Source: Lepidodermella squamata
Taxonomy: Eukaryota; Animalia; Gastrotricha
Assembly: GCA_047495785.1 (NCBI GenBank)
Contig: JBLDXI010000066.1
Coordinates: forward strand, 620,001-684,000
Reading direction: 5' to 3'
Length of the DNA stretch: 64,000 bases
The translations under genes were made by a program, and so were the position numbers. Below, one piece after another: positions 623 to 29,827 of this stretch. Every line of letters begins with the position of its first letter. Within the stretch, counting starts at the first letter, position 1. The notes under the pieces are model-generated. The model did no database searches and was not told the DNA's origin. It was given only the letters and a program-made list of their open reading frames with translations.

Positions 623-627
623 TTGAA

Positions 628-3120: not shown

Positions 3121-3442
3121 CTCGAATTATATATAATTTAATATAACCGGCTCATTTGCATCTCAAAGTAAATCAAAGAAAAGGAAAACTACATTTGCTT
3201 TTGCAAGGTGCGCTCACGTCTTCCCATATTTTGGGCGTCCAATACTCCCCCCTTACGCTGAATTTTTGTCCTCATTCGCGGACGCGCAATTGTCATAACA
3301 AATCATTCCAGCAATTTCAAACTCACTAATTAATTATTTGAAACGCCCTTGAAATGTTTTGCCAATTTCCATGGTCAGGCTCGAATTGCCAAAAAGGGCG
3401 TAAGCCGTCAAGTGGCTTAGCTCCGGCAATTCCTATCTGCTA

Positions 3443-3827
3443 TTCCAGCTACTCGATCAGAGACACCTTCGCCAATGCTCTGGGGAGCGATCAGAATGCC
3501 AGAGGTGAGACTGCCTTCGAGGCGATCGAACCCCATAGCTGTGTCTTTATCCGCTCGCAACAGCCAGCACTCCTGCCGATAAGGAACGTAGAAGGCAGAT
3601 CGGCAGGGAGGGTTGTAACTAGCAAGGCATTTGCTTTGACATTGTTCCTGGCTCGAAACAGTGCGGTTGAACGGCTGAATAACGTACAGGTTGAAAGCCA
3701 GATCGGAGAGGTCCACATTTAGGGCTATTTCTTGGGGCTGGAAGTAGCTCGAGCATTTTCCTCGCATTATCATCTCAGCATTCATCGGGTCTAGCAGCCC
3801 TGCGAACAGAAGCAGCAAAGGCACCAT
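3443..3827 (-). pseudogene. Truncated copy (A) of the PAN-CTHRC1 gene family; part of exon 1 only
   Basis: Near-identical to exon 1 of copy C (MVPLLLLFAG vs MVTLLLLFAG) up to DRVAGI. Homology then stops and no downstream exons are present. The upstream region (about 3830-4300) also resembles C's upstream region. Confidence 0.8.
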
Positions 3828-4423
3828 CTTGGAACTTGCAGCTAGGATTAAAAATGACGGCTCCTGCCATTTGACATGCATTCGCCTGGTTCTATCAATA
3901 AATTATGGGAAATGAAGGCAAACAGAGTCATGGTGACGGTCGAATAAACGAGCATATTATTTTATCCTTTGTTCTTTATGTATATAAGTTAGTATCATAC
4001 CCCGGCGGGTAACATGTCGGCACAATGCGAGAGAGTTCACGTACTTATCGAAGTCGTTGGCTTCGTATTCAATATCGGTTCACGTGGTATGATGCTCAAT
4101 ATTCAAATGAATAAATTTAAGGTCACTGTCAATGCTCATGGCTCGAAACAGTGCGGTTGCCCGGCTGAATATCGAATTGCTTTACGAAGAGAATACGCCG
4201 CGGGAGCTATGAAGTTTACTCAATTCGTCAATGTTCTATTTGCAATTCATATTGCCTCTCATTGTCAGGCCTAACTCATTCTTCTATTTTTTGCAAGCTA
4301 TTTCTGGCTTGACCTAATTCACGCCATCAATTGAGATGGTTACACCAGTTATGTGAAGTATATGAACTGAAGGTATCTTGAAAACGCGACAATTATCAAT
4401 GAAGTGTCAAGATTGTTATAGGT

Positions 4424-7293
4424 TCACAGGTTCCCATCGTAGACCTCTTCGACCATCAAGTAAGAAGCGCCTCCCAAAGTGGCGGCGTAGGTCTTGAGGA
4501 AGGATCCCCAGTTTGGATCGAGTCTAGCAAGAGCGAGAGCAATGTTGACCGGACCGGCTGGGATGGTCATCTTACACACTCCTTCCACTGGAGAATTTCA
4601 AGTGACGAGATTCAGTTAAAATGATTGCTAATTGAACTTACCAACTGTAGGCATTGCTCGGCAAAGTCCCCAGCCAGGGGCGTTGAAGAACCACCAGGAC
4701 TCAATTCGCGTTGGATTGCTGCAATCGGCGCCATTGATTGTCACGTACCAGCGAGATGCCTCTGCAGCAGTATTGCCGTTACTGCAGAACTCCTGCATAC
4801 CGTACCATTTAACATGCAATGCCGAGCTATTCTGCAGTTTATTGTAGGTTCGCGTCTGCAGAAATATAAAATATTTGTTCTCAGTGTCCCAAAATACAAA
4901 TATTTACCACTTGCCTACAATTGAATCTACTATCTAGTGCTTATTCCCTTTCTTTATAAGAAATCGAGCTTATAGAAAACGGCTATTTTAAAGCTTTAAG
5001 CTAGTTAAGTTTAGCCCGAAAATAGGAAAGAGTGAATGAAAAATATTTTGCCATCAAATTGGAAATTCGAATGCATACTTACAGCAAGTGGATTCAAACA
5101 AGCATTCCCAGCAGTGGCCCGGCAACTTTCTGTGATCGAAAAGTACTGCCGGTTGTAGTATGGCATTTGAAGGACTGTTCCATCGTTGAGGAGCACTTGT
5201 ATAAGTAATCGAAAAGCAATTGCGGAAATTTTATATGCTGCGTAAAAACTCACAAACGTTGATGGGTAAATTTTCGTGAATTTCTTCGACAATCATTCCA
5301 GACGGCTTGTTTCTTCCAATATCTATCTGACCGCCACTCCCGCCATCGGGGTAGTAGGCGCAACTGTGGTCCCACCAAACTACTATGTCGTATCTGCCTG
5401 CCGGCAGACCACGGCAAACTCCATCAACTTGGCAGTAATTTGAATAAAAATGATAGAAATAATAGCGAATTCTACATACGCTCCAAGTTGTATTGTGATG
5501 GCCCCACGCGAGCTGTTCCAGTGTTGTAAGTATACTCCCTGTAAGCAGTTTCTATCGAATAAGGGTTTGTACAAAGCTGATCGTTGATGGTCACGTAAAA
5601 GCGCGTGCAGCGGTCGTACAGATTGTTGTAAACTGGAGCTTGCCAATAAATCCTGAGGAGGGATGTATCTGATCGCTTCTTGTACTTCCAAACCGCCTAT
5701 CAATGAATAAATTGAATAGAGGCTCTGATGTAAGGAATTAACTTACCCAATCGGTTTTCCCCTTTGTTTGCCAACCATCGAAGGACATTGCTTTCCACTG
5801 TTTCGAAAATGTGTTGTAAACCTTTTCGTATACACGAAGAATTGGTTCGGAATGTTTATGATAAAGCAATTATGTATTACCGTTGCACTCTGGCATCGAG
5901 CTGAGTCATCTGTTGAAAGCAACGGGTCAGTGTTTCAAATAATTTTAACTTGAACAATGGACCTATTTTCATGAGATAGTCCGAAGGGACGTATTCCTCG
6001 ATCAAGATGAAGTTAGGAGCTTTGAAGCCGTTTAGATTGAACCCGATATCACCGCCGTTGCCTTGCGATCCCCAATAGCGATAATCGTAGTAGAAGGTTA
6101 CCGGGTACGTTCCTTTCGGAAGATCAACCAGCATGCACGGGAATTCAGCGTGGAAACTTTTCCCGAAATTATCGCTAGTGTGACCATCGTTGAAGTCGTT
6201 TTGAATCGACCAGAACATGTTATCATCCCCAGCACAGTTGAGATCATTAATATTCGCATAAATATAGATAGTGCGGTAAGGGCAGCAGGCCTGGTTGTAA
6301 TGACCCCAGTGAGCGATTGATATGTGAATCCGAATGTGAGTGAAATCATGCTTCTTCACAAATGTCGTGGTCTGCGAGATAAAATCATGATAATTTAAAA
6401 ATTGGGAAACCACGTTGACCCACCCATAGTTGGAATGGCATGGCACTGCCATATCTTGGCTGGTACATGTCGCCATTCTGAATGATTGTAACGCGACGCG
6501 GGACGTCGAAGCAAGAAGCCATGTCACCTAAAGTTACACGAAATGGTGACTTAAATGAAGCTCAACGCCAGCCGGTTATTTTCAAATTCTGCCTTGAAAC
6601 TTGAACTCAGCAATTAGCAGACTACTCAGACCTCGAAATTTTACATGATACCGGATTTTATGAGTTTATATCAAAGTAAGCGTCAAGCTTAGCTTGAAAT
6701 TCTAATATTCCCTCTGCCCTTGAAAACTTTGAAGCTATCTGCCTAGAAACCATTCATTAGCTTGAGCAATTACTCAATGATTCGTGCACGGCTCTTAAGA
6801 TACCTGCGCAATATGCTGGCGTGCCAGGGCAGTCTTGCAAACAAACTGGCGAGATGGCATCGGCTGAAGGCTGACTGATGGCCGGGCAAAAGCTGTCGCA
6901 GTTATCGAACCCTGTGGTGCGATCGGAGACTCCTTCGCCTATAGTCTGAGGAGCGATCAATATTCCAGATGTCAAGATCCCATCATTTCGATCGAAACCC
7001 ATTGCTGTGTCCTTGTCAGCCCTGAGCAACCAACATTCGTTGCGATTAGGAATGTAAAATGCCGAGCGGCATGGTGGGTTTGCGTTCGACAGGCACTTCA
7101 CCTGGCACTGCTCATGGCTTTTCACAGTTTGATTGACCCCGCGAATGATGTACAGATTCCAGGCAAGATCTGACATGTCGACGTTGAGAGCGACATCTTG
7201 AGCGTGGAAGTAGCTTGAACACTTCCCGCGCATAATGAACTCGGCTGATGAGAGCTGAGCATGGGCTAGGAGAACAACCACTAATATCTCCAT
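4424..7293 (-). CDS. Secreted PAN/apple + 3x CTHRC1 C-terminal-like domain protein, copy B (multi-exon)
   Basis: Signal peptide; PAN-like CQVKC...CRSAFY...ECWL. Three repeats resemble CTHRC1-C (KxxxxSxLRIxW...RxYxTINGxxCxxPxxIE...EGVCxxxPAG...EE). Canonical GT-AG introns give a continuous frame ending YDGNL*. Confidence 0.8.
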
Positions 7294-8396
7294 TTTTGCT
7301 CGATTTGCTCGAACAATATCCCGGAATTACAGCCCCGTTGCGTCAAAAAGTTGCCGCGCGATCGCAATCAATAATGAGGTGACAGGTCCTTTCTACTGCG
7401 CACTCTCACTTTAAGCTGCCCGAAGCTTTGAACGGGCGAGAAATCATATAGCACCTCGGGGTCTGGATTCCTTAAATATTACGGTGTTTCTCTGCTTACT
7501 TAATTGCGCCTTATCGATGTGGAGAGCAGCGCGTGCTGTTCTGTCATTTTCCTTCCTCTCAATGCTAGGACTTGAAGAAACCCAAAAACCTCCTTATTGA
7601 AGTTTTGGCAGCTGTACACACCGAAGGCAAAAAAATACCGGAATTTTTGCCTCATGCCGTTTTTTACAAACTCCCAACCACTGTAATAAATAATTATTGC
7701 CTCAGTCTATGTTGATGACGGTGAAAAAATCAATCTACTTTTGATAAACTAGCCTCACAAGTAGCACAAAAAGCAAGGATAAATTCTGATAAGCATTCGA
7801 TACGCTTTGGGTCACGGAAAACTTAATTCAGACTAATGCGATGGGCAAATTCGCCCTTTCCAATTCAACGTGATGAACGATGAACCACGCAATTATTTTC
7901 CACCCCAATCTATCCTTTGTCACCCGACGTGCTCTGAGGGCGGCGTCTCATAAACGTGACATGCCTTACATAGGCTTACTGAAAAAAAAACCAAAAAACA
8001 AATAGATGAACCTCTTTATGGTCGAAGTCTGGAACTTATGACTGGACTTACGCTCGAAGCGATGATTTAAGTAATAATGGTTTTTTATATGCGTTTACGA
8101 AAAGTTTCACAAATTTCAAAGATTCTTCAGCGTCCTTAAGCTACAGAAATATTGGTCGCAAGCCTCACAATTGTCTTCGTCATTAATTTTATCGATGAGC
8201 CTGCTGAGAAAGAAGAAGCTAAAAAGTATAAGAAAGCACTAGCTAAATTACTTAACGGTGGGGGTATAGTACTATAAAGTAAAGCGATTGTTGAGACATC
8301 TATAATGTTCAATTTCAAACAAAGTCAATACGTTTATTCGAGTCGCCATGAGTTCAATGCATTCCTTTAGTAGTTTCGGCGATTCAAAGACCAACT

Positions 8397-11390
8397 TTAA
8401 ATGTTGCCCTCGTAAACTTCCTCAACCATCAGATAGGCCGATCCGCCAAGAGTTGCTGCGTACGTTTTGGCGAAACCTCCCCAGCTAGGGTGATTTTTCC
8501 CGAAAGCCAACGTGAGCGTTACAGGTCCCGCCGAAATTGGAACCCTGCATACCCCCTCGACTACGAAAAAATAAATTACAATAAAAATGAAATCACAATT
8601 ATTTTGGCAAAGTCATGTCTGACTAACCGACTCTGGGAACGGCTCTGCAGAGACCGTAGGCTACACCGTCGTAATGCCACCAAGATTCGATTGGTGACGG
8701 GCTAGCGCACTCAGCCCCGTTGATCATAATGTAAAACCGAACACTTTCAGCTCCGTTGTTCCCATTCGTACAGAACTCCTGCACTCCGTACCATTTGATA
8801 TGAAGGTTGGACTTTTCCTGTAGCTTTGAATAGGTTCGAGTCTAAGTAACGGAGAAAATGTCATTTCCATGGTTATCTGCGAAAAAATACCGCGATCGTG
8901 CTTAAACAGGCTGCCCCAGCAGTAGCCCGGCAACCTTCTGTTATCGAGAAATACCGCCTATTGTAATACGGCAGTTGGACAACAGTACCATCGTTCGTCA
9001 ATACTGTAACAAGAAGTGATATATCCGGAATGAATTTTGCCGCGAGAGTTGAACTTACAAACGTTGATCGGCAAGTTTTCGTTGATTTCTTCGACAATCA
9101 TTCCCGCAGATTTACCTCGGCCTATATTGATGCTATCACCTGAATTGCCGTCTGTATAGTAAGCACAATTGTGGTCCCACCAAACAGCTATATCGTATCT
9201 CCCTGCCGGCAGTCCTCGGCACACTCCATCAACTATAACGATTGACAAACCCGTTAATTATTTTCTGGTAATAAATGAAAAGTGGGGTTCGGCGTATATT
9301 CTGTATTTTTGAGCAAATAGCAAAAGGTGGGGACGAACTCTGGATTACTCCATGTCCTTACTCCGTTTTTCTTGGGGATTTCAAATTTTCGAAATTCAGA
9401 CCTCCAAGCCGAGACTCAAAAGTCGCCAAAATTCAGGCCGACGTAGAGCTTGATTCCCTCAACATTTTTGAACATCTGATTCATTACCTCAGATCAATCC
9501 AAACATCTCGACTGCACATAGGAATATAACGTCAGAATTGCGTGTCGGTCGCGATTTTTTTTAGAAATTAGCAATTTTGCACCCGTAAACTTTGAAGCTT
9601 ATTCTCTTCGCAACCTTGATGGCTATCAGCCTCTTTTTGATATCGTTCGACTCCTTGAACGCGGCATCAAAATCTCATGATGTTAGAAATTTCGCCAAAC
9701 CACTTGCTAACGGTCATTTGTAACGAGAATTATGTAAAATAAAAAATTGTGTAAGTATGCTCATGTTATGTTACATTTTAATCTTTAATTTAAAAAATAT
9801 ATGAGGCTTATATGAGGCACATATTAGCTAGGGATAAAACATACGTTCAATTGTGATGCCGTACGGTCCAACTCGATATTGGTTGACATTGTAAGTTATC
9901 TCACGGATAACTGTCTCGATCGAGTATGGATTTGTGCATAGCTGATCGTTAATCGTAGCAAATAGACGCGTACAACGATTGTAACTGTTGACAATGATCG
10001 TGGCTTGCCAGTAAATTCGCAGCAGTGAAGTGTCCGATCGCTTTTTGTACTTCCAGATTGCATAGTCTGTTCTGCCACTCGCAAGATTCCCATTGTACGA
10101 CAAACTTACCCATTGATCTGTTACGGTGTTGAAAACCTGGAAAGACGCAATAAAATCGGGGAAATTTCTTCAATACATACTTTCATATGCTTACTGTTGC
10201 GCTCTGACACCTTGCAGTATCGTCTAAAGTTTTAGTTTAGCGAAGTCATGATAAGTGAGGAAGAATTCACCTAGCTTGAATAAGTATTTTGCTGGGATAA
10301 ATTCCTCGACCCAAATCATATTAGGAGACAACCTTCCATTGAGATTGCCACCCAAGTCGATTCCGACGCCTTGGCCCATCCCCCAGGTACGATAGTCGTA
10401 AAAGGTTTTCACGTCATAAGTCCCAGCGGGAATTTCATTCAGCGTGCAAGGAAATTCGGCGTGATGCGAAAACCCATGGTAATCATTATAGCAGCCGTCT
10501 GTAAATTCATTTTGCAGAGCCCAGAAGGCACCCTCATCACCAGCGCAGTTGATTCCATTGACGGTCGCAAACACATAGCCGTCTCTATTTGTGATACTTG
10601 AACCGGCGTTGTAGTGACTCCAATACGCAATGGAAATGTGGATCCGAATGTGTGTGAAATCATGCTTCTTTGTGATAGAGGTTGTCTGACAACAAAATGG
10701 CAGGATTAAGGTTATTCTAGACTACGGGCGGCACAAACGTACCCAAAGTGGTAAAGGTGAAGAAAGTGAGCTTCGCGTATTGCAATTGACCCCATTTATG
10801 TTGATTGTTACTCGACGCGGGAAGTCGAAGCACGACAACATCTCTCCTTCAAAGAAAATAAGACTTATTCCCAAAAATGTGTTGCAAAGGAGTTAGGAAC
10901 CTGCACAGTAAGGTGGCGTATTCGGGCAATCTTGAACACAAACAGGCGAAATCGCAGTGGCCGAGGGAACTGTAATAGCTGGGCAGAAAGTGTCACAGCT
11001 ATCAATTCCAGCTACTCGATCCGAGACACCTTCGCCAATGCTCTGGGGAGCGATCAGAATGCCAGAAGTGAGACTACCTTCCATGCGATCGAACCCTATT
11101 GCCGTGTCTTTATCGGCTCGCAACAGCCAGCACTCCTGGCGATAGGGAATGTAGAAAGCTGTTCGACAGGGAGGGCTGTAGCTCGCTAGGCATTTGCTTT
11201 GACATTGTTCCTGGCTCGAAACAGTTCGGTTGAACGGCTGAATGACGTAAAGGTTGAAAGCCAGATCGAAGAGGTCAACATTCAAAGCTATTTCCTGTGG
11301 TTGAAAGTAGCTGGAACATTTGCCTCGCATTATCATTTCAGCATTCATCGAGCCCAGCAGCCCTGCGAACAGAAGCAGCAAAGTTACCAT
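8397..11390 (-). CDS. Secreted PAN/apple + 3x CTHRC1-C-like protein, copy C
   Basis: Same exon series as B; ATG at 11390; ends VEEVYEGNI* at 8397. Confidence 0.8.
9280..9705. mobile_element. Probable degenerate MITE enlarging an intron of copy C
   Basis: This intron is about 610 bp versus about 50 bp in paralogues. Imperfect terminal inverted repeat AAGTGGGGTTCGGCG / CGCCAAACCACTT. Confidence 0.4.
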
Positions 11391-12823
11391 TTTTCTTGCA
11401 CTCGAAGCTTGGATTGAAATGAGGGTTTTTTGCATAAATGACTTCCGGTGGTCCTTTTAACTATTTATGAAGACGAATAGAGCCATGGTGATAGTGATCA
11501 ACTAATAAATTAATTAATCCACAAAGGTGCTTCTTCTTGAATGTTAGCATACCAGACGCCAAAAAGGTGCGAGACGATTTAAATTAATTTGCTCAATTCG
11601 TCAATATCCTATGCAAAATTTATATTGCTTCTCCTAATTAACTCATTTTAATATTCGAACGCATGTGAGTGTTTTTTGGTTGACGCAGCTGGAAGTCACG
11701 GCTAGGAAATATTGGTTTAGCTGCACCCAGAATTGGCGGTTTTATAAGATTTTATAATATTGTCCACATCTAGGTCCACAGCCAAGGTTTCCACTCGAGC
11801 AGCCTTAACCATAATTGTACACAGATCGGAGTTGGGTATCGATTGCTTTTCATTTTCAGATTGTCTTTGATGTTTTATCTTCAATACCAACCTGAAATCA
11901 ATATCCTTTATAACGTTATTTATTCTTCAGATTCCCGATTCCCGAGGCTAACAAATCTTCTCAGCATCAATTTCATTTCAGCTTTCATCGATAGTAGGAC
12001 TCAACATTCATCATAATGAATATTTCCTGATGTGAAGCTCCAAGTCAAACGTAGTTTGAACCATTTTTCCGCCAGGTACCATCATTTATCTTTAATAAGT
12101 GTTGCTAATTTGGCTGCACTGAGTCATAGTGATGGAGGAAGGGGTGGGAAAACGAATGAAATAATCAATGTTGCCTTAATCACTCAGTTAGGGCTACAAG
12201 AAGCGGAAAAACCTGACTTATTATTGATTCGATAAGCTTTGGGGCAGAAGCTTGTAAACCCAACACCTGACATCATAGAAGCAAATACATTTGCTTATGT
12301 CGCCCGTAATTGCAGGTTTCCTATTTTATTTTTGTTAAGATTGCTAAGAGGCTGTAACTTGGAAAAAGTTAAAAGGAAAGAAAACATACAGCATACCGCA
12401 TACACTTGCAGGATTCAGAGCTCAGCTTTGCTAGGGTTTTGCTAATAAACCCGACGGTTGATTATTTATTTCCAGCCAGATATCAGCAGAGTAAACTCAA
12501 ATATGCTTACGCAAGAATGTAAAAAATGTTGTTTTAGCTAAAACCACACATCTACAAGTAGGCTGACATCGTTGAATGATTAGAAGCTGGTCGAAACTTT
12601 ATGAGGTTTAAAGCCAACACTTGCCTACTTTCTGCTCGGCACACATTTGCTGTGACTACGCACTACGCACAAATGAATGAACTTGACCTTGGCTGTTTCA
12701 AAAATATCAGGGTGTGCCTGATCTGTGCCCCTTGGTGCATATCGGCACATGACGCTAATATCAATATTCAACGCAGTAGAAGAAGTAGGATCCTCGAGGT
12801 AGGGGTTCGCTATCTGGGTTTTT

Positions 12824-12991
12824 CCCGTAGCAACATTTTCCACTTTTATAATTAATTATGCAAATGAGTTCGAGAAAAACAGGATACAAGAAAAATTTGC
12901 CAGCAAAAGGTTCGAGGAAAAAATCTGGTTTCTTGTATTTTTCAAACTCATTTGCATAATAAATTATAAAAGTGGAAAATGTTGCTACGGG
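12824..12991. mobile_element. Short MITE / foldback element
   Basis: About 46-bp near-perfect TIRs (CCCGTAGCAACATTTTCCACTTTTATAATT..ATTATGCAAATGAGTT). TSD not clear. Confidence 0.7.
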
Positions 12992-14942: not shown

Positions 14943-15532
14943 ATGGCTCGTTGCATATATTTCTTAATACTAGTTGCTGTTTCATTTGCATGCACAGGTA
15001 ATAATATCTTAATCTAGTATATAATTCATAATTGCAGTGCCATCTTGTGGGTGGGAATTAGTTTCAAGTAACTTCAAAAATTGTCAAGTGAAATTAATCG
15101 GGAATTCCAAAACGAATTTTTTACTTATTCCTTTGTTCAACTGAAACAATAAACTTATATCATTCAATTTGTTGTACAAATTTAGCTGCCATAAAGTGCT
15201 ATGCAGGAACCAGCGATAAGTATGACGAGGTGGATGGCTGCGTTTTTTGCGAAATTCATGTAGCTGAAGTTGATGAAAGATACATGAAAGACATGAAAGA
15301 TACAACGAAGATTTGCCTAGCATTCAATGCCAGCCTTGAGCTCGGCTGCACATTCGCGACATCCGGAGTCGCAAGCGCAGCGGTTTGCTACTGCAACACC
15401 GACCTGTGCAACAACAACATCTGCACAACCGGCGGGTGCAACACCGACTTATGCAACAACGACCAGTGTAACATCGACAAGTGCTACACTGACGCGTGCA
15501 ACACCGCTGGTCTCGCGATGGTTAGCGCCTAG
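14943..15532 (+). CDS. Three-finger (Ly6-like) protein with a reiterated CNTDLCN tail; exons 14943-14997 and 15186-15532
   Basis: Signal peptide MARCIYFLILVAVSFACTA, AIKCYAG..CVFC, VCYCNTDLCN followed by further Cx4C repeats. TAG at 15530 interrupts a GPI-like hydrophobic tail that runs to 15580. Confidence 0.7.
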
Positions 15533-16300
15533 GCCGCAATCACGGTTTCGTTGTTCATTGCAGCTTATTTCGTGATGTAAACAAGCGCCGATTTTTCGTG
15601 AATTGATAAATTTTGATAATGCTTTTTTGATTCATGTTCATTTGCAATGTTTGATAAGAATTGCAAAGCAGCCGAGCAGCCTAGAGGCGCGGAATTATTA
15701 GTTTTGAATAAACTGGCGGTGTTTTTTCACAAATTAAATTCAGAAAATCTTCGATTGATCGAGTATATAGTATTCCGTAGCACAGGGAAATTTTAGAACA
15801 AGGTACATTTTGACACACTGGACAGTCAATTAGTGCTGTTGCCCAAGATCGCGGACATGATTTGCCTGACGATAGTCGTGAGTAGATCTTCGAGAATCTA
15901 TGGTTTAACTTGAATTCGTCGTGTGTACAAGACAAACAAAGGTGAAATGGAGGATTTGAAAGCGAAAGTGTGTTACTTATTTAGAAAATGAAGCGTTCGC
16001 GCGAGCGAGCGCCAAATTGTAAACCAATTTTAGCTGCATTACCGGCAAACTCTTCGGGATCCCGAACAATAGCAGCCTGATAACGCCATGGTATTAAGTC
16101 AGTAAACTCGCCGATTTGCTAAATCGTTACTGGAAATAGGAAACAACGAAGTTGGCTGAAGCACAACTTGCTCTTTTAACTTCTTGTCGTCACTTGCAAC
16201 CTTCACACTTCAAACTGACCATGGAGAACGTAGCGAGATCTATGGAACTGACATGGGATTAAGCTTAAATCCGACTGGCCTCACTCATAAACAGCTTGCC

Positions 16301-16709
16301 CATAGAGAAAAAATGACCAGAGAAAGCACTCAAGCTAAAATTTCTAAATCCTCATTTTAATTCAAAGTTGACTTTCTCAAAACGGATATCTCCGTTTTCT
16401 ACCAAATTTTGCATGCCTGTAGAACGCGAGCTGCTCTTTCACGTGGTATAAGATTTGAGGTGGGCAACCCAACCGTTGTTATGATACAAAAACCTCGTTT
16501 CCACTATGGTTTTACTTATTTTGATGCTATCAAGACTGAGCAGCAATTGCCCACCTCAAATCTTATACCACGTGAAAGAGCAGCTCGCGTTCTATAGGCA
16601 TGCAAAATTTGGTAGAAAACGGTGATATCCGTTTTGAGAACGCACTTCTATAATAATGGAGATCAAAATTTTAGCTTGAGTGCTTACTCTGGTCATTTTT
16701 TTCTCTATG
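16301..16709. mobile_element. Foldback MITE with 8-bp TSD (P-element- or hAT-type)
   Basis: Termini CATAGAGAAAAAATGACCAGAG / CTCTGGTCATTTTTTTCTCTATG; long internal inverted arms; AGCTTGCC duplicated at 16293-16300 and 16710-16717. Confidence 0.85.
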
Positions 16710-17134: not shown

Positions 17135-19698
17135 ATGAAGCATTTCGTAATAGCTGTCCTGGCTTACGCTCAGCTCTCGTCAGCCGAGTTCATCATGCGC
17201 GGGAAGTGTTCAAGCTACTTCCACGCTCAAGATGTCGCTCTCAACGTCGACATGAAAGATCTCGCCTGGAATCTGTACATCATTCGCGGGGTCAATCAAA
17301 CCGTGAAAAATCATGAGCAGTGTCAGACGAAATGCCTGTCAAACACTAACCCACCATGTCGATCGGCATTTTACATTCCTAACCGCAACGAATGTTGGCT
17401 GCTTAGGGCTGATAAAGACACAGCAATGGGCTTTGATCGCAGTAATGGAGACCTTACTTCTGGAATTTTGATCGCTCCTCAGACTATTGGTGAGGGAGTC
17501 TCCGATCGTACAACTGGTATCGATGGCTGCGACAACTTTTGCCCGGCCAACAGTCAGCCTTCAGCCGATGCAATCTCGCCGATATGCGTGCAAGACTGCC
17601 CTGGTACCCCGGCCTACTGCGCAGGTATACACTTGAAGCTTCAGGTTTTGATAGAAACTATAAAAAAAAATCAAGAATTTTGTGAATATGCATTGAAGTC
17701 AGAAACTTGAGAAATAGGATGGCTCCGTATGAGAGTTGAAACAGCGTCAATTTTTCTTGCTACATTAGGTGATATGGCCTCTTGTTTTGACGTTCCGCGC
17801 CGAGTCACTATCATTCAGAATGGCGACTCGTTCTCACCTAGATACAGCAGTACCATGCCTTTCCAGTTATGGGTGCGTTAAGGAGCTTGAATGACCTCCT
17901 GAGTGATTAAAAATTGTATATTTAGACATCTACGTTCGTGAAGAAGCATGATTTCACTCACATTCGGATTCACATCTCAATCGCTCACTGGGCTCATAAC
18001 AACTATGCTAGCTACCCTTTCCGCAATATCTACATTTATGCGAATATAAATGATCTCAACTGTGCTGGGGATGATAACATGTTTTGGACGATCAATAATG
18101 ATTTCATTGACGGCTATTTCAACGACTATTTCGGGAAGAGTTTCCACGCTGAATTCCCGTGTATGCTGGTCGACCTTCCGAAAGGAACGTATCCTGTTAC
18201 CTTCTACTACGACTATCGCTATTGGGGATCGCAAGGCAACGGCGCGGATATCGGGTTCAATCTAAACGGCTTCAAAGCTCCTAACTTCATTTGGATCGAG
18301 GAATACATCCCTTCGGATTATCTCATGAAAATAGGTAATGTAATAGGCGGAACTGACAACTAAAAATTCTGATCTTTCGCTCAAAACAGATGATTCCGCT
18401 CGATGCCAGAGTGCAACGGTAATCATTGATTCATTCTAAATATTCCTATTTCCCAACCATGTCCTTTTTCCTTTCGAAAAGGTATACAACACGTTTTCGA
18501 AGCAGTGGAAAGCCTTGAGCTACGACGGTTGGCAAACGAGGGGTAAAACCGATTGGGTAAGTTAACTCCTTACATCAGAGCCTCTATTTAGTTTATTCAT
18601 TGATAGGCGGTTTGGAAGTACAAGAAGCGATCGGATACATCCCTTCTTAGAATTTACTGGCAGGCTACAGTGTACAACGTTCTGTACGACCGTTGCACCC
18701 GTTTTTACGTGACCATCAACGATCAGCTTTGTACAAATCCTTATTCGATCGAAACTGCTTACAAGGAGCTTACCTATAACACTGGAACGTCTCGAATGGG
18801 GCCATCAGCTTACACCTTAGAACGTATTTGGAATTCGCACTTGATTTTTTCCATTCCTTTACTATTAATGTTCAAGTCGATGGAGTTTGCCGTGGCCTGC
18901 CGGCGGGTAGATACGATATAGTAGTATGGTGGGACCACAGTTGCGCCTATTACGCCGATGGCGTATCCGGATCTACCGTCGATATCGGAAGAAACAAGCC
19001 TTCTGGAATGATTGTCGAAGAAATTCACGAAAATTTGCCCATCAACGTTTGTAAGTTTGGCGCAGCATTTTGTAATAAATCGTAGTTATCTGATCTGTTT
19101 CAGTGCTCCTCAACGATGGAACAATCCTTCAAATGCCGTACTACAACCGGCAGTACTTTTCAATCACGGAAAGTTGCAGAGGGGCTGGAACATCACTGTG
19201 TTTCAACCCCTTGGCTGTAGGACTGAGTATTCTTGATATTTCCTTGAATTAACTTTGCAATTTTCACAGTCCCGAACATTCAACAAACTGCAGAACAACT
19301 CTGCATTGCATGTTAAATGGTACGGTATGCAGGAGTTGTGCAATGCCGGTAACTATGCTGGCGAGGCATCTCGCTGGTACGTCACCATAAATGGCGCCGA
19401 TTGCAGCAATCCAACGCGAATTGAGTCCTGGTGGTTCTTCAACGCCCCAGGCTGGGGAGTTTGCCGGGCAATGCCTACAGTTGGTAAGCTCATTTAGCAC
19501 ATAAGGCTGCATCTTTTAACCCATAATTATAAAGTGGAAGGAGTCTGTAAGATGGCCATCCCCGCCGGCCCGGTCAACATTGCTCTCGCTCTTGCGAAAG
19601 TGGATCCAAACTGGGCATCCTTCCTCAAGACCTACGGCGTCACTTATGGAGGCTCTTCTTATTTGATGGTCGAAGAGGTCTACGACGGAAACCTGTAA
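17135..19698 (+). CDS. Secreted PAN/apple + 3x CTHRC1-C-like protein, copy D (inverted relative to the others; closest to B)
   Basis: ATG at 17135 (MKHFVIAVLAYAQLSSAEF); same exon series; ends VEEVYDGNL* at 19698. Confidence 0.8.
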
Positions 19699-20295
19699 TA
19701 ATCAATCTAAAAAAATCAATCTTGACTCTTGAATGACCGGTAGGGAATATGTATAACATTTAACCCAGTTTCATCATCTCAATCGACGTTAACAAGCATT
19801 CCGTCAAGCTAAAAATAGCGTAATTATACTTTGAGCAGAAAGTATTGACGACTTGAATGATCTTTGTTTGGAATAACATCATTGTGATACCATTGAATCA
19901 AAAACTTTTTTCTCGGCTGGCATTGGTCATTAACTTTAGACGCCATCGAACCAGCCTTAGACCAGTCTTATGGCAACAGCCGGAGTTTGCCTGGGCGAGG
20001 AAAAATCTGCTGACGAGAGCTGAGCCTAATTCAGAAGAAAAAGAAGATAGCTCTTCATTTATTAAATCCGACAGTTTATTTCGGAGAACGAAACAAAGGC
20101 TTTGCTAGCAAACCATGTAAATCTTGTATATCAAGCTTGAGTCCTGTTCTTTACAATAGCCCTAATCCATATGACCTCACAGGTATAATTGTTAATTATC
20201 GCACAGCGATATTACCGCATAATTTCATCATTATACAATATGATACAATAAATGATAGTCACACTGTAATCCCTTTCGCAGCCTCCAGCGTTCAG

Positions 20296-23200
20296 TTACA
20301 GATTTCCATCGTAGGTTTCTTCAACCATTAAATAAGACGCTCCACCAAGGGTAGCCGAGTAAATCTTGTTGAAAGCTCCCCAGCCACCAGCTGTGTCGAC
20401 CTTCCCGACCGTAAGCCCTATTGTTACAGCCCCAGCTGGAATCGGACCGCGACAAATGCCCTCCACTATTTCAAATTTGTACGAGTGTTCGAATCGAATT
20501 TAAACATGCTTACCGACACTCGGCATAGCTCGACACAATCCGTAAGCCGGTCCGTTAAAGTACCACCAGGACTCGATGCGCTGTGGGCTCGTGCAATCAG
20601 CTCCATTGATCGTGATGTAGAAGCGCGTCCCCTCATTATTATTATTTCCATTCGTGCACATTTCTTGCATTCCGTACCATTTTACGTGCAGGGAGGATGC
20701 GTTTTGAAGTTTGTTATACGTCCTTGTCTGAAAAATCAGGAAACGTAAAGTATGTCTTCGATGCTTGAATAGGCTCACCGTGATAGGGCTTAAACAGGCT
20801 GAACCAGCCAGCGCTCTGCATCCTTCAGTAATCGAATAATATCGCCGGTTGAAGTAGGGCAGAAGAAGGGCACTTCCATCATTAAGTAAAACTTAATGGG
20901 AACAAGATAATCACTGCTTAACGTATCAGCCTTAAGGTATCAGACTTACAGACGTTGATAGGTAGGTTTTCGTGAATTTCTTCGACTATCATCCCGGATG
21001 GCTTCGCTCTCCCGATATCGATGCTACCCCCAGAGCCTCCATCTGTATAGTAGGCGCAATTGTGGTCCCACCACAACCTGATATCGTACTTCCCAGCTGG
21101 CAAGTTGCGACACACCCCATCAACTAGATGAAAATGAAAAGGGACCTCGACTGTGAATTACGAAAAGAGACACCAACGTTCGATTGTGTAGCCGGATGGT
21201 CCAACTCTGCTCTGCCCAGTTCCGTATGTCAATTCCTTGTAGACGGTTTCGATAGAGTAAGGATCAGTGCAAAGTCGGTCGTTGATTGTGAAGTAAAATC
21301 GTATGCAGCGGTCGTAAAGGTTCAGAAGAACTGTCCCTTGCCAGTAAATTCGCAGCAACGAAGTATCAGATCGCTTTTTGTACTTCCAAATTGCCTTTCA
21401 AGGAGGAAATCTTGAAATTATATTGAAATTTCAAATAATCAGCCAACCCAGTCAGTCATTCCACCAGTAAGCCATCCATTAAAATTCAAAGCTTTCCATT
21501 GCTTGGAAACTGTATTGAAGACCTAGGGAATATTTCGAGAAGATCAAACTAAGGACAGTAGGGGAATACTCACAGTCGCGCTCTGACACCTAGCCGTGTC
21601 ATCTGTCGAAAGTCAATTGTAAAACCTGAGGTTTTCACGAACTTTTCAAACCTAATTTAAAGAAATAGTCTGAGGGTATGTACTCCTCGACCCAGATGAA
21701 GTGGGGAGGCGAAACGCCATTCACAGTCATGCCGATATTTGCTCCATTGCCCTGGCTCATGCCGAAGGAGCGATAGTCGTAATAGAAAACGACTTGATAG
21801 GTTCCAGCTGGAAAATCCGTGAGCGTGCATGGGAATTCACCGTGCAATGACTTGCTGAAAGTATCGCTGTTATGTGTGTCGTAGAATTCGCTTTCTAGGA
21901 CCCAGAAGATATTGTCATCCCCAGCGCAGTTGATACCGTTAATTGTAACATAGACGTAGCTGTCACGTAGCGGGCAACATGAGGGGTTTGAATTGAAGTT
22001 ATTCCAAGCCCCGATTGATATATGAATGCGGAAATGGGTGAAGTCATGCTTTTTGGTCACGGACATTGTCTGAGAAAAATATAATTTGTTTAGATCTCAA
22101 ATAGATTCATGACTCACCCAAAGTTGAAAGGGATAGGCGCTGGCAGATCGAGGCGAAAATACGGCCTTGTTTTGTATGACCGTGACTCGCCTCGGGACAT
22201 CAAAGCACGAAGCCATTTCACCTATAACAACGCGTGAATTACAGTGTGGGGCATAAATGTTGAGCCGATTTAATTTCTACGCAGCGCAGTCATTTTGGCT
22301 CCGATTTCTACATATCTTACACCGTTGGAAAGCCCATGAAAAACAATATATTCCCCTAAAGTTTTGCTCGAGTGATCCTGGGCGAATCCAAGTTACAGCA
22401 AATTTGAGACGTCGAGCTGGTCGCTCAAAAACACGTCACTTTTTGTTACAACTATGCCAGTTTTGAGCCTCACTGAACTCTAAAAAGTCCGGACTCCAAC
22501 TGGGCTAGCTATAAAATGGCACAGATACCAATGAATCTGATGAAAAAGGTCATTTTTCGCCTCGTTTTGTGGCAAAAGAGACTTTCGCAAGCATGCTACC
22601 GATAACGTGCTTTAGTTTGTTCACTTGCTTGCGAGCTTAATACGCATTTTCGTAGGCTTCATTGCATCCCAAAGCTCTCGAATGAATTTCTTTGCCTATA
22701 TGGTATACCTTCTCTAGACCAATCATCCTGTCGCGATAAGACTTATATTATTGTCCCAAACCATTGTCAGAGATGGCTGGAGTATGTCGGAATACTGATT
22801 TGTCAATTTATTAAGGTTTTGGGGCGTCATAAGATTGCCTTTGATACGTACAAAAGCTTGAGTTTAAATTTTTGAAATTTACGTGTTTTTGAGCAACCAG
22901 CTCGACGTCTCAAATTCGGCTCAACAAAGTCGGCTCAAAATTTATGCCCCTTACTGTAATTAGTCACAAAACTCAAAAATGTATGATCTCTCACCAGCGC
23001 AATAAGATTCGTTGTTTGGGCAATCCTTCAAGCAAACTGGGGAGATGGCATCGGCTGAGGGCTGGCTGATTGCAGGACAGAAGTCGTCGCAGCCATCAAT
23101 ACCCGTGGTTCGGTCCGGCACTCCCTCCCCTATCGTCTGCGGAGCGATCAAAATTCCTGAAGTTAAATCCCCACTATCGCGATCAAACCCAATCGCTGTG

Positions 23201-23487
23201 TCCTTATCTGCCCTGAGAAGCCAGCATTCCAAGCGGCTAGGTACGTAGAAAGCCGTGCGACAAGGTGGTGACGAGGTCGCAAGGCATCGCGTTTCGCATT
23301 GTTCTTGGTTCGCGACGTTTCGACTCGCGCCTCTTATCACGTAGAGGTTCCAAGCTAAATCGGATGTATCAACGTTCAACGCGATATCTTGGGCGTGGAA
23401 GTAATTAGAGCACTTCCCTCTGAATATGAATTCACCGGAAACATTGCAGGCAATCGTTAGTATCAGAATTGTGAAAACTTTTGCCAT
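20296..23487 (-). CDS. Secreted PAN/apple + 3x CTHRC1-C-like protein, copy E
   Basis: MAKVFTILILTIACNVSGEF; same exon series; ends VEETYDGNL*. Confidence 0.8.
22242..22956. mobile_element. Tc1/mariner-type MITE in intron 1 of copy E
   Basis: TA-flanked TIRs CAGTGTGGGGCATAAATGTTGAGCCGA / TCGGCTCAAAATTTATGCCCCTTACTG. The paralogous intron of copy F (about 29280-29334) is an empty site. Confidence 0.85.
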
Positions 23488-24275
23488 TTCCAGTTGCTCG
23501 TTTTTTGAATTCTCGCATGAACTATTTTGCAGAAGAGAAAAATTGACCTTGGCTTTTGTCCAGGCAAATGGTTAACTGACGTCAACGGCTTGACTTCACT
23601 CCTAACTATATTTACCTCATAAAATTTTTACTTTTCTTGCGTGAAAGGTTAGGCAAGGTGCGACACATTCTGCTAGCGTGTTCAAAATCATGGGAATAAT
23701 GAATAATGAATTGATGAGTATCTATTTATAGAAATGTAAATTATTGATTGGCCCAGGTGGCGTAACCAGCTGGTTGTTTTGGTTGTTCAAACAACTACCA
23801 AAATGAAAGCTCAAAACCCCCTCTTTGCCCTATTTCTCGGCAGTATAACAATGTCCATTAGGGCTCTGACTTCCGATCACTTCGACTGAGGCGAGGTTGT
23901 ATTTTTCTCTAAATTATTCGGCACATTGCTCGTAATGAGCGCGCTTTCCCCGGTCGACCTCAGCTGATTTTTTCGGCTGATTTTTCAAACTGGATTGTTG
24001 GGTCGAGGATGCAACCTTCTCTTGTTGCTTTGCTGGATGTAATGTCGTGGACCCTTTTGAGGCTGTCATTATCTGCTAGACAAGGTACCTCCTCACTGTT
24101 AAATGTTAAAGCAATGCTAAAAACCTGAAAGTTCATTTTCGGAAACTTCCGCTCGATAATTTCTCTGAAGGATAAAAAAATCATTATTTATGGAAAATGC
24201 ATTATTTCGCGCTTCTTAATAAAAGGCAAAGCAAGCGAACAATATGCACTATGAAGTATGTTATATTATATTATT

Positions 24276-24742
24276 CATGAGCGTGTCTGTGCTAACGAAG
24301 TGAAAAACTCGACAAATCGCCCTCTGGCGGAATGGTCGTTAATAAACAGCAGCCTTTGTGCTGCATGGCGCTCTTCAATCAGCCGTCCATGTTACGTAGC
24401 ACCAATCAAACTTGTGAACTCCATCCGCTATCGTCAGGGTGCGATCCGCGAGCTCCCAGGGATGGAAAAAAAAATTTTGCTGTTTTTGCCAAAATGACGA
24501 GTCATTTCGACGAGTCCCCCCTGAAAGTCGCACACTGGCTATCGTCCTCCAGTAGCTCGCGTCTATCCAGGTAACCATCAAATCGATCAAGTATAGCAGA
24601 CATCAAAACCTTCAAATGCCGATGATTGTTTGGAAAAGCGACATGATAGACCGGGTGTCGGCGCTGAAGTCACTGACAACACTTCCCACCATCAGGAGAT
24701 GGCTTATCCCAGCGAATGACAGCGTGATTCCACCGAAAACCA
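24276..24742 (-). pseudogene. Duplicated, internally deleted 3' fragment of the polycystin-like gene
   Basis: 24276-24590 resembles 30516-30720 (last exon) and about 24610-24742 resembles about 31066-31195. The intervening part is missing. Confidence 0.8.
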
Positions 24743-24789
24743 CAGAGTCAGAGTCCCGAGGAAAAAGAAATCGCACATTGAGGTTTAAA

Positions 24790-24979
24790 TATCGTTAGCG
24801 ACGTTTAATAGCGATTTGGGCTTGTTTACGTCAGTTTAAAGGTGAACTGTGGCAAGTGAAAAGTCATTTGTTTTTGCTTTTTTATTCAAGTAAAAAACAG
24901 CGCTTTTTACTTGTCACCGGTACCTTGAAAATGACGCAAATAAGCCTAAATCCGAGTTATTCAACGTCGCTAACGATAT
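24790..24979. mobile_element. Imperfect foldback / MITE-like hairpin
   Basis: ATATCGTTAGCGACGTTTAATA pairs with TATTCAACGTCGCTAACGATAT, with further imperfect pairing inward. Confidence 0.5.
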
Positions 24980-25774
24980 CACTAGCATTCTTGAAGGATA
25001 AGTTTCAAAAAGTTTGAGGCTATTTGAGGCTCACGACTATTTTCACCTTTTGAATAAATGCATTCAATTTAGTGTGCAAATTTCATAATTAGCGATAACA
25101 GGCGAGTGTCCGATCTATTACATCATCTGCTAGTAAAACAACAGGCGCCTGCTAAGCGGGCGCCAATGTATACTCACGGTGAAATTTCTCAAATTTCGGA
25201 TCACTGGTAACCGCGTCGACTGCACTGAGGGGTTCTAAATTCTCAACTAAAGACAAGTCCCTGAGGTTAACACACGTAAGAATCGTCGTCAACATGGTCG
25301 ATTTGATAAGGAAGCCCAAATCAAAATGTGGATTTATGAAAAGGTTAGCATATCTGATTCATGCATGAACAAGAACTCTTGTAACATGGATAATTAGTCC
25401 ACTGGGTTACTCCTCGAATGGTGATGGGTTACTTAAAAACTTAAACTTAAACTTAAACGTTATTGACGTGCAATTATCATATGCATGATTTGCATGATTC
25501 CGTTCCCCGCGACCTGAAGACCAAAAGTTCGCGAATGAACGCCCTCTAATTAGACCGATCACGAGTGGTCTCTTCAATTTTGTCACAATTCAGACATTTT
25601 TCAATGTAGACGCTTAAAAGATTCTGTTAATTTTCGAGATTTTTTGCGTGCAGTAAGCTCTAAGCACTACATTAATCCCATCCTACCCTTGGCTTTCCCC
25701 TTGCCCAACTTTCTCTGCCACTCATGGATCGGGTGTCGTTCATTCTAAGAAAGAAAGAAAGAGACGTAGTCGGT

Positions 25775-25990
25775 TATGTTCTGTTTGAGCTGAGATGGGT
25801 TCTATGCCCGCGCAAATTTACCTCATGTCTTCGTTTCCGACTTCGTCCATGATTGTGACGTTGGCTATAGCCCTAGGCCACCTCATCTGTACCACCCACA
25901 GCCGCATTTGGTGGGCTACGGTTGCATTCCAGTTTTCACAGGCGTAGAGGAATGTCGGAGTCATTACTTCTCGTTTCACCTTCATTTTAT
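25775..25990 (-). mobile_element. Non-LTR retrotransposon (RTE-like) ORF remnant
   Basis: Translates to KMKVKREVMTPTFLYACENWNATVAHQMRLWVVQMRWPRAIANVTIMDEVGNEDMR*. This matches the post-RT 'PxLLYGxExW...MRxLRxI...DxxxNExIR' segment. Confidence 0.65.
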
Positions 25991-26283
25991 AAATACTACT
26001 TTTTATAAATGTATTTAATGCCCCAGCTTTTACACGACCCGGCTTTTTGCACCCATTCTGCTATTTCCAGAGTGCAATTACCGTCAGAGCTAATTATGAA
26101 TGACTCATGGCAAAAGCTTGGGGTTGTCTAGACGAGGAAAAACTGCTGAGCCTTAATCAGGAGAACAACAAAGAAACACTTCCTTTGTGATTTTCGAACG
26201 TTCATTTCGGAGAACAAAACGAAGTCGTTATTGGCAAGCCATGTAAATACTGTTAACTATCAAGCTTGCGTCTCTACCATAGT

Positions 26284-27139
26284 CAGGGTATTCGGTTTAA
26301 ACTCAAACCAGTTTCTACCAGTTTACACCGGTGCCGGTAAAAACCGGTTTTTTCTCAATTACAATAAAAACCGCGGTTTTAATTAAACAGACTAATCCGA
26401 CGGTTAGATAGTAAGACATCACCAGGAATATGTCGTCCTAGCTGAAAGTGTTGGCACAAAGTTCAGCTACAAGACCAGGAGTTGCGTTAGTTATGATAAT
26501 CAGCTATGAATCTAAGCGTGAAGGATCATTTGAAAAGTAAGATTCGGCCAAATTCGAACAAAATCAATCATTCACTGTATAATCGATAATCCATTTTTGA
26601 TAACAGATACTCCCAGTGTAAAAACAGATGCGCTCAGCGTGTTCAGCGCCTCAGATTACCCCTAGAACTCAAATATCTCTACATAATTCGCAAATCTAAC
26701 GAAAATATCGGAAAATCAAAATTCACTTCCGGTTTTTCAATTGTTGAGCAGAAAATTGTAAAAAAAGTTTTTTCAAAAGAATCGGCAAAACCGCGTCTTT
26801 TGATCGCAAAATCCCCCTCAGGAACTCAATCCCGTTTTCAGAATTTTATTACTTTTAGCTGTTTTTTATTACTTTATTGCTTTATTGCTTTATTGCATTC
26901 AATCGAATTTTCATGAAAATAGTCGAGTAACACATCAAACTATGCAGTTTTTTGCGTAGATTAACGTGGTGTACTCGAAAATTCAATGGAAGCTAAGGCA
27001 TTTGAGTTGTTTGACTCTCCTTTGGTCAGATCCTTTGATTATTGAAATTCATTAAAAACCGGTGTTTATTAGCGGTATAAATCGGTTTAAACTGGTGGGC
27101 GGTTTTTTCAGAATAAAAACCGGTCGGTATAATACCCTG
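26284..27139. mobile_element. Non-autonomous hAT element
   Basis: CAGGGTATT / AATACCCTG termini, subterminal AAACCG/ACCGG repeats, 8-bp TSD ACCATAGT. Absent from the paralogous region near 20140-20170. Confidence 0.85.
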
Positions 27140-27260
27140 ACCATAGTCCTATTCTATCATAGGGCACACTTAAAATTAACAAAAGTTACCGCATTATCAC
27201 TATGTCAAATTACGAAAAACAATATTCACGCTGATATATGTTGCGTAGCCTGCGGTGCTA

Positions 27261-29827
27261 TTACAGATTTCCATCGTAGGTTTCTTCAACCATTAAGTAG
27301 GACGCTCCGCCAAGGGTAGCCGAGTAAATCTTGTTGAAAGATCCCCAATTGTTAACTGTGTCGACCTTTCCCAATGTAAGTCCTATTGTAACAGCCCCAG
27401 CTGGTATCGGACCGCGACAAATGCCCTCCACTATTCCAAATTTGGATGAATTTCCGAATTGAATACTGAATTTAAGCATACTTACCGACATTCGGCATAG
27501 CTCGGCACAATCCGTAAGCCGGTCCGTTAAAGTACCACCAGGACTCGATGCGCTGTGGGCTCGTGCAATCAGCTCCATTGATCGTGATGTAGAAGCGCGT
27601 CCCCTCAGGATTGTTATTTCCATTCGTGCACATTTCTTGCATTCCGTACCATTTCACGTGGAGGGACGACGCGTTTTGAAGTTTGTTATATGTCCTCGTC
27701 TGGAAAATCATAAAACGTCAAACGCTAAGTGAAATTAAGGATGAGAGATTGTCTTATTTCTAATTTCAAATTATGCAGAATTGGGTCCGAAAAATGGGAC
27801 ACGCTCTCTAGTTCACAAACTCGAAAGCACCCACCGTGATAGGGTTCAAACAGGCTGCGCCAGCCTGAGCTCTGCAGCCTTCTGTAATAGAATAATATCG
27901 CCGGTTGAAGTAGGGCAGAAGCAGGGCACTTCCATCATTGAGTAAAACTAAACAAGGACAATGTAATAATTTGACATGCCTTTACTTATTACTTTTTAGA
28001 CTTACAGACGTTGATGGGTAGATTTTCGTGAATTTCTTCGACTATCATCCCGGATGGCTTCGTTCTCCCGATATCGATGCTACCCCCAGTACCTCCATCT
28101 GTATAGTAGGAGCAATAGTGGTCCCACCACAGCCGGATGTCGTACTTCCCAGCTGGCAAATTGCGACACACCCCATCAACTAGATAGAAATGAAAAGGAA
28201 TCTCGGCTGTGAATTAAAAAAAAACCAACGTTCGATTGTGTAGCCGGATGGCCCAACTCGGCTCGTTCCAGTTCCGTACGTCAATTCCTTATAGACAGTT
28301 TCGATAGAGTAAGGGTCAGTGCAAAGTCGGTCGTTGATTGTGAAGTAAAATCGTATGCAGCGGTCGTAAAGGTTCAGAAGAACTGTCGCTTGCCAGTAAA
28401 TTCGCAGCAACGAAGTATCAGATCGTTTTTTGTACTTCCAAATTGACTGTGAGGGAGAAACTTTGAAATAATGTTTAAATTTCGAATAAGTAATAAGCCA
28501 ACCCAGTCAGTCGTGCCACCAAAAAGCCATCCATTAAAATTCGAAGCTTTCCATTGCTTAGAAACTGTATTAAAGACCTAGGGAATATTTCGAGAATATC
28601 AAACTAAGGACAGTAGGGAACACTCACAGTCGCGCTCTGGCACCTAGCCGTGTCATCTGTCGAAAATGCATTTTAAAACAATAATTTCGACTGAATCTTC
28701 GAACCTAATTTGAAGAAATAGTCTGAAGGTATGTACTCCTCGACCCAGATGAAGTTGGGAGACGAAACGCCAGACACAGTCACGCCGATATCGGCACCGT
28801 TGCCTCTGCTCATGCCGAAGTTACGATAATCGTAATAGAAATTTATTTGATAAGTTCCAGCTGGAAAGTCTGTGAGCGTGCATGGGAATTCAGCGTGCAA
28901 TGACTTGCCGAAAGTATCGCTGTTATGCGCGTCGTAGAATTCGCTTTGTAGGACCCAGAAGATGCTGTCATCCCCAGCGCAGTTGATACCGTTAACAGTA
29001 GCGTAGATGTAGCTGTCGCGTAAGGGGCAGCAGCCGTTGTTTAAATTAAGGTTATTCCAAGCCCCGATTGATATATGGATGCGGAAATGCGTGAAATCAT
29101 GCTTTTTTGTTACGGACATTGTCTGGGAAAAATATGAAATTATTCAAAAAATCTCGATTGGAATCAATACTCACCCAAAGTTGAAATGGATAGGCGCTCG
29201 CAGATCGGGGCGAAAATGTGGCCTTGTTTTGTATGACCGTGACTCGCCTCGGGACATCAAAGCACGAAGCCATTTCACCTATAACAACGCGTGAAATAAT
29301 TCATCACTAAACTCAGAAATGTCTGGTCCCTCACCAGCGCAGTAAGATTCGTTGTCTGGACAGTCTTGTAGGCAAACTGGGGAGATGGCATCGGCTGAGG
29401 GCTGGCTGATGGCCGGACAAAAATTGTCGCAGCCATCAATCCCCGTGGTTCGGTCCGACACACCGTCACCTATCGTTTGTGGAGCGATTAGAATTCCCGA
29501 GGTTACATCCTCGCGATCGCGATCGAACCCCATCGCTGTGTCCTTATCTGCCCTGAGAAGCCAGCACTCCATGCTGCTGGGTACGTAAAAAGCCGTGCGA
29601 CAAGGTGGTGACGAGGTCGCAAGGCATCGCGTTTCGCATTGTTCCTGATTCGTGACGTTTCGACTCGCGCCTCTTATCACGTAGAGGTTCCAAGCTAAAT
29701 CGGATGTATCAACGTTCAGCGTGACATCTTGGGCGTGGAAGTAATTCGAGCACTTCCCTCTGAATATGAATTCAGCGGAAACATTGGAGGCAATCGTTAG
29801 TATCAAAATTGCAAAGACTTTTGCCAT
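27261..29827 (-). CDS. Secreted PAN/apple + 3x CTHRC1-C-like protein, copy F (closest to E)
   Basis: MAKVFAILILTIASNVSAEF; same exon series; ends VEETYDGNL*. Confidence 0.8.

Follow-up and report, generated by a model that had tools for sequence, protein, structure and literature searches.

The window analysed here, the whole 64,000-nucleotide stretch of Lepidodermella squamata DNA, carries a family of secreted proteins without collagen that is specific to this lineage and has grown by tandem duplication. Each intact member joins an N-terminal PAN domain to three consecutive domains of the CTHRC1_C type, which may together make up the equivalent of one trimeric head in a single chain.

The window is eukaryotic DNA with a G+C content of 40-46%. 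When the spliced protein of gene F was used as a tblastn query, six copies were found at 3441-29827 and none in the rest of the 64 kb. Gene F was modelled by hand from the sequence and served as the basis for the other copies; the exons of B to E were searched for by keeping the phases of F and requiring AG/GT borders and stop-free frames. Complete models with nine exons were obtained for B, C, D, E and F, and the encoded proteins are 635-643 aa long. All 40 introns of these genes are GT-AG, internal stops are absent, and the exon phases (0,1,0,1,0,1,1,0,1) are identical in the five genes. The tblastn search and the nine-exon models thus bear out the first-pass annotation, which had counted five intact genes (B-F) and one fragment (A).

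Copy A (3441..3881, minus strand; tblastn, PAN_1 28.9 bits) is a truncated exon 1 of which only the portion for the signal peptide and PAN domain is left. It retains only about the first 129 residues of this exon, and the homology with the family breaks off at 3441. Its open reading frame starts from the ATG at 3881 or 3827 and runs to a stop at 3417-3419, and its DNA is 89% identical to exon 1 of gene C. Gene B (4424..7293, minus strand, 637 aa) has its exons at 7293-6804, 6527-6424, 6371-5963, 5909-5881, 5696-5480, 5427-5254, 5195-5083, 4855-4642 and 4587-4424, and matches PAN_1 with 32.9 bits and CTHRC1_C with 25.9 bits in exon 5 and with 35.9 bits in exon 8. The exons of gene C (8397..11390, minus strand, 635 aa; PAN_1 26.5 bits, CTHRC1_C 30.7 and 28.9 bits) lie at 11390-10901, 10846-10743, 10685-10271, 10223-10195, 10049-9845, 9232-9059, 9003-8891, 8841-8628 and 8560-8397. 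Here the splice acceptor of exon 5 is shifted inwards by 12 nt relative to the other copies, as the AG at the ancestral position is missing, and the protein is 4 aa shorter at this point. Gene D (17135..19698, 637 aa; PAN_1 34.6 bits, CTHRC1_C 26.2 and 36.4 bits) is on the plus strand, with exons at 17135-17624, 17769-17872, 17926-18334, 18390-18418, 18607-18823, 18877-19050, 19104-19216, 19270-19483 and 19535-19698. Gene E (20296..23487, minus strand, 643 aa; PAN_1 24.5 bits, CTHRC1_C 33.6 and 31.6 bits) has exons at 23487-22995, 22221-22118, 22069-21652, 21602-21574, 21394-21178, 21123-20950, 20891-20779, 20727-20514 and 20465-20296. Gene F (27261..29827, minus strand, 643 aa), which matches Pfam PAN_1 and CTHRC1_C, is described below domain by domain.

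The copies are of different ages. The youngest pair is E and F (dS 0.29, 91% amino acid identity), where F is a direct duplicate of E in a unit of roughly 7.05 kb, flanks included. B and D follow, with dS 0.53 and 87% amino acid identity, D being inverted; in all the other paralogue pairs dS is saturated. For the two young pairs, dN/dS comes to 0.14-0.16 over the genes as a whole, with values of 0.07-0.33 in the individual regions. Judged from their sequences, the paralogues are old and maintained under purifying selection, and are neither pseudogenes nor amplification artefacts. The rival reading here would be that the gene models are artefacts, either unexpressed pseudogenes, duplicates created in the assembly of amplified DNA, or separate genes wrongly joined. 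In its favour, the one public sequencing run holding the locus is of genomic DNA and has no splice joints, and the Lepidodermella squamata assembly was made by multiple-displacement amplification, which can give chimeras (PMC11660948). Against it stand five intact open reading frames of 1905-1929 nt with canonical splice sites, dS values from 0.29 to saturation and dN/dS of about 0.15. Moreover, chimeric duplicates are not a suitable explanation because the copies differ by 9-37% in protein, and a misjoining of separate genes is opposed by domains 2 and 3, which lack both a separate start codon and a separate signal peptide and whose exons start in phase 1. We consider an artefact of any of these kinds very improbable.

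Exon 1 of gene F (29827-29335, minus strand) encodes a signal peptide (residues 1-18), a PAN domain (about 20-115) and a Cys-rich linker (116-164). In B to F, the N-terminus has a hydrophobic core with a maximum 10-residue Kyte-Doolittle mean of 2.1-3.1. This core is followed by S-S-A, V-S-A/G or M-N-A and then by E-F/E-M, which places small residues at -3/-1. Judged by eye, the N-terminus is signal-peptide-like and predicted to be cleavable. No other hydrophobic segment is present in B-F, and hence no membrane segment. The PAN_1 profile (PF00024, gathering cut-off 21.4 bits) matched all six exon-1 peptides above the gathering score, with 24.5-34.6 bits. When language-model neighbours of exon 1 were retrieved, 53 of the 60 named Atlas clusters that lay closest carried PAN families. 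The AF2 model of exon 1, covering PAN and linker, was unusable (pLDDT 37.5), and the PAN fold is predicted from the profile match. The linker is 49 residues long and has five conserved cysteines, two C-x3-C pairs among them; a sixth conserved cysteine stands at the start of domain 1, and the whole protein has 24.

The rest of the protein is made of three domains. In gene F, on the minus strand, domain 1 (aa 165-338) is encoded at 29278-29175 and 29122-28705, domain 2 (aa 339-478) at 28656-28628, 28446-28230 and 28179-28006, and domain 3 (aa 479-643) at 27947-27835, 27699-27486 and 27430-27261. Domains 2 and 3 were recognised by the Pfam profile CTHRC1_C (PF25815, cut-off 27 bits). The N-terminal half of domain 3 (exon 8) scored 28.9-36.4 bits and exceeded the cut-off in all five genes, and that of domain 2 (exon 5) scored 25.9-33.6 bits and did so in three of five; both halves aligned to profile positions 27-79. 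Weak colinear matches to positions 97-126 were also seen in two of the ten peptides from the C-terminal halves (C exon 6 and E exon 9). None of the scanned exon peptides matched the Pfam C1q profile, with E limits of 1 or 10. When the core of domain 3 was compared by sequence with the PDB, chance cytochrome b matches were all that came back, and no solved structure of a CTHRC1 head was found in this way.

Domain 1 is more difficult to place. It had no Pfam match at E up to 1, and by hhalign it was not significantly similar to domain 3. A language-model search for look-alikes put CTHRC1_C only at rank 11, with a score of 0.87. The AF2 model of the domain (exon 3) is of low confidence (pLDDT 59.8), and its matches in the PDB by Foldseek and VIA-align were weak (Z at most 6.4, Foldseek E at least 0.007). 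The PDB matches included trimeric TNF/C1q-type heads (the Pgp3 C-terminal domain, Cbln1, EDA and TNF), but these did not surpass generic beta-sandwiches, C2 domains for instance, and the resemblance of the model to the Cbln1, C1QL1 and C1q heads was likewise weak (TM 0.34-0.41). The lack of a Pfam match, the hhalign result with domain 3, the low language-model rank and the generic character of the PDB matches would favour a protein in which PAN is followed by an unrelated beta-sandwich and by two CTHRC1_C domains. Other evidence argues against this reading. In hhalign, 112 columns of domains 1 and 2 aligned (E 5e-6), the motifs following one another in the same order, and domain 2 aligned with domain 3 at E 1.4e-8. 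In an alignment of the 15 domain sequences, the three domains have in common the motif Y/F-x-T-I-N-x-x-x-C, then P-A-G (P-A-G-x-Y) and then V-E-E. The intron before the K-K/Y-K-K strand has the same position and phase in domains 1, 2 and 3, and the best shape matches of the domain 1 model in the ESM-Atlas were CTHRC1_C clusters (TM 0.56-0.63 over 108 residues). An unrelated domain 1 is therefore unlikely in our opinion.

By these comparisons the three domains are mutually homologous and domain 1 is the divergent one, with pairwise identities among the three of 21.6%, 18.9% and 30.9%. The number of CTHRC1_C-type domains per chain is exactly three in all five paralogues, one of them being detectable only by profile-profile alignment. 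The first-pass annotation had described a signal peptide, a PAN domain, a Cys-rich linker and three CTHRC1-C-type domains with no collagen, and this overall architecture is supported by Pfam, hhalign and the scan for Gly-X-Y. Its claim that each of the three repeats carries the CTHRC1 C-terminal signature held in Pfam for domains 2 and 3; for domain 1 it is supported by the hhalign match to domain 2, the common motifs, the intron position and the shape of a low-confidence model. As for collagen, no run of at least three G-x-x units was present in C, D, E or F. Gene B has one chance run of four such units, in a loop of domain 1.

The gene structure indicates how the domains arose. The domain units start and end in intron phase 1, and both internal intron positions are common to domains 2 and 3; exon-block duplication therefore made the domains. 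Furthermore, domains at the same position are 60-90% identical across the paralogues, compared with 18.9-30.9% between positions in one protein, so the triplication is older than the gene duplications. In our reading, an exon block bounded by phase 1 introns was duplicated within the gene, giving three CTHRC1_C-type (C1q/TNF-like beta-sandwich) domains before the genes multiplied.

What such a triplication may have produced depends on how the CTHRC1 head works. The free head is thought to act as a trimer that is held by the collagen stalk. For the head itself, Leclere et al. 2020 give a predicted C1q-like structure, able to trimerise without clashes (PMC7058181). In the gastrotrich proteins, 22 residues separate the E-E-Y-I-P end of domain 1 from the point of domain 2 that corresponds to profile position 27, which leaves no room for a free linker. 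Because the head is predicted to be trimeric and C1q-like, and because there are exactly three heads, no stalk, tight junctions and divergence by position, we propose that the three fused heads form a single-chain intramolecular pseudo-trimer. The packing is something that we purely infer, and we give this proposal a little less than an even chance. If the three fused heads pack together in one chain, the collagen stalk would become dispensable, and the single-chain fusion would leave the three 'subunits' free to diverge.

The main competitor is that the heads are beads on a string, either independent of each other or trimerising across chains, so that the protein would act as an intermolecular cross-linker in a multivalent network (cuticle, scales, adhesive secretion or apical matrix). 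Old, conserved paralogues with dN/dS of about 0.15 resemble genes for matrix or structural proteins more than they do receptors caught in an arms race, and PAN domains are present in many extracellular matrix proteins. Moreover, the tight junctions suit a rigid rod equally well. In support of independent heads, the C1q domains of the bivalve protein HcC1qDC6 each bind ligand alone: all three were produced as recombinant domains and bound ligands individually (PMC5519582). However, exactly three domains in five of five paralogues fits a closed trimer, and a string need not stop at three. In addition, the positions have diverged from each other and are yet conserved across the paralogues, as would be the case for non-equivalent subunits of one head. 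We regard the string or cross-linker as a real possibility, somewhat less likely than the pseudo-trimer.

Returning to the intramolecular pseudo-trimer, the PAN domain would serve as a second binding module, and the whole would be a soluble extracellular binding or bridging molecule. It may recognise ligands in the manner of a lectin, or attach to matrix, cuticle or mucus. The strong conservation would rather suit a matrix protein or one with a housekeeping task outside the cell, and the analogy with the bivalve C1q domain-containing (C1qDC) proteins would rather suit pattern recognition. Sliding windows gave only three small pockets in which replacement exceeds silent change, with few substitutions and not convincing as positive selection. 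There is one such pocket per domain, always in the corresponding late loop (in F, at residues of about 311-330, 441-460 and 611-630). Hypervariable loops and positive selection were rejected on these windows, on the regional dN/dS of 0.07-0.33 and, for domain 1, on the variability of strand and non-strand positions, which did not differ significantly (p = 0.19). The fullest version of our proposal, which we advance with somewhat more reserve, is that of an asymmetric natural pseudo-trimer that replaces collagen trimerisation and carries a PAN domain, whose late loops may contribute to one composite binding face, in a gastrotrich-specific recognition or matrix system. A family with a triplicated head in one chain and no stalk would be a natural experiment, showing that function resides in the head rather than in the stalk. 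For structural work, it could in addition supply the trimer as a monomer that can be expressed.

Next, we looked for relatives. A profile of domain 1, built from exon 3 of the five paralogues, was searched against 1.84 billion representative proteins, and no true relative was found in them. Four matches were to bacterial repeat proteins of the SpaA, CARDB and CarboxypepD_reg types; they were rejected as relatives because all that they have in common with the profile is a short motif of P-A-G-T-Y type in a beta-strand. Metagenome contigs were scanned with one pattern from domain 1 and one from domain 2, with no confirmed relative, and a combination of CTHRC1 with PAN/apple was not found in our searches of papers. 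The arrangement of PAN and three CTHRC1_C domains without collagen is new within these searches; the principle of three heads in tandem is already known. The first-pass statement that no described family has this architecture is supported within the papers searched and, for domain 1, the 1.84 billion proteins. The pseudo-trimer idea is less unprecedented than that annotation supposed, since collagen-less proteins with three C1q domains, the fold predicted for the CTHRC1 head, are described in bivalves.

Finally, we compared the family with known systems. Most work on CTHRC1 concerns vertebrates, where it regulates collagen deposition and Wnt/PCP signalling. Flatworms are the sister group of gastrotrichs. 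According to Leclere et al. 2020, flatworms have lost the CTHRC1 family and gastrotrichs were outside the sampling (PMC7058181); our results extend CTHRC1_C to this previously unsampled phylum, Gastrotricha. As the family is described in the same source, the gastrotrich proteins are like other CTHRC1 proteins in being secreted, in having CTHRC1_C (domains 2 and 3) and in being prone to tandem, clade-specific expansion (PMC7058181). They are unlike the canonical members, which have a collagen repeat and one head: Gly-X-Y is absent, each chain has three heads, and PAN stands at the N-terminus, followed by the Cys-rich linker. Term searches of the text of Leclere et al. 2020 gave no mention of tandem C-terminal domains (PMC7058181). 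The same paper mentions that choanoflagellates and Symbiodinium have proteins in which the CTHRC1 C-terminal domain occurs without a collagen repeat (PMC7058181). Compared by this description only, these are alike in the collagen-less head, and tandem heads or PAN are not part of the description.

The closest architectural parallel is offered by bivalve C1qDC proteins with three tandem C1q domains, namely HcC1qDC6, HcC1qDC5 and CfC1qDC-2 (PMC5519582, PMC10672478). In HcC1qDC6 the three domains occupy residues 24-159, 167-302 and 305-443 (PMC5519582; PMC10672478). Like the proteins described here, the bivalve ones have a signal peptide and three consecutive C1q-type heads, are collagen-less and secreted, and are tandemly expanded. 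Their heads are joined by linkers of few residues, and their role in the binding of microbial patterns has been demonstrated. An intramolecular trimer is not mentioned in the papers on the triple-C1q proteins (PMC5519582, PMC10672478). Unlike the bivalve proteins, ours have no Pfam C1q match; the bivalve ones have no PAN domain and belong to another phylum. On this comparison, the two are tied by analogy, or by a homology that is very remote, and not by membership, and the gastrotrich family would parallel the triple-C1q proteins that arose independently in bivalves. The principle is also familiar from engineered single-chain C1q and TNF heads, in which very short linkers join three subunits into a functional trimeric head. 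Those constructs are artificial; the fusion described here would be a natural one, and its three units are strongly diverged.

In these secreted PAN/CTHRC1_C-type proteins, the stretch just after the PAN core is conserved even more strongly than the PAN domain. This stretch, which occupies residues 100-130 of each protein (29528-29438 on the minus strand in gene F), has the consensus L-T-S-G-I-L-I-A-P-Q-x-I-G-x-G-V-x-D-R and is nearly invariant across all six copies, including the truncated exon-1 fragment A.

The young duplicate genes E and F differ in the length of intron 1, which measures 773 nt in E (22222-22994) but just 56 nt in F. Since contig depth peaks within this intron of gene E (bin 22220-22419), our results suggest that a repeat was inserted there.

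We also analyzed the sequences surrounding the family. At the left edge, window positions 1-2000 contain three plus-strand ORFs (131-622, 628-1341 and 1348-1968), separated by about 1.5 kb from fragment A (3441-3881). On the other side, gene F is directly adjoined by a polycystin-type gene (30670-35301, minus strand), whose last large ORF matched Polycystin_dom (74 bits) and PKD_channel (70 bits), while the Pfam search returned no match for its upstream ORFs (724 and 202 aa). Next to it, a minus-strand run of ORFs (35449-42960) carries many teneurin/Delta-type EGF repeats together with CUB domains, and probably represents a single large gene, or two of them, for extracellular proteins with multiple domains. 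Further right are two long intronless ORFs, without Pfam match at E 0.001: one of 398 aa (49272-50468, plus strand), Cys-rich and with a signal-like start, and one of 377 aa (53341-54474, minus strand), which is multi-pass membrane-like.

Finally, genes C and D are separated by a spacer that contains a plus-strand ORF (15230-15575) with repeated cysteine motifs of the C-N-T-D-L-C-N-N type. Note that a Thr/Ala-rich alternative frame overlaps this ORF. The same spacer carries a near-perfect inverted repeat (16374-16640), with 94-nt arms that are 98% complementary and separated by 79 nt. This repeat may be a small element of the foldback or MITE-like type.
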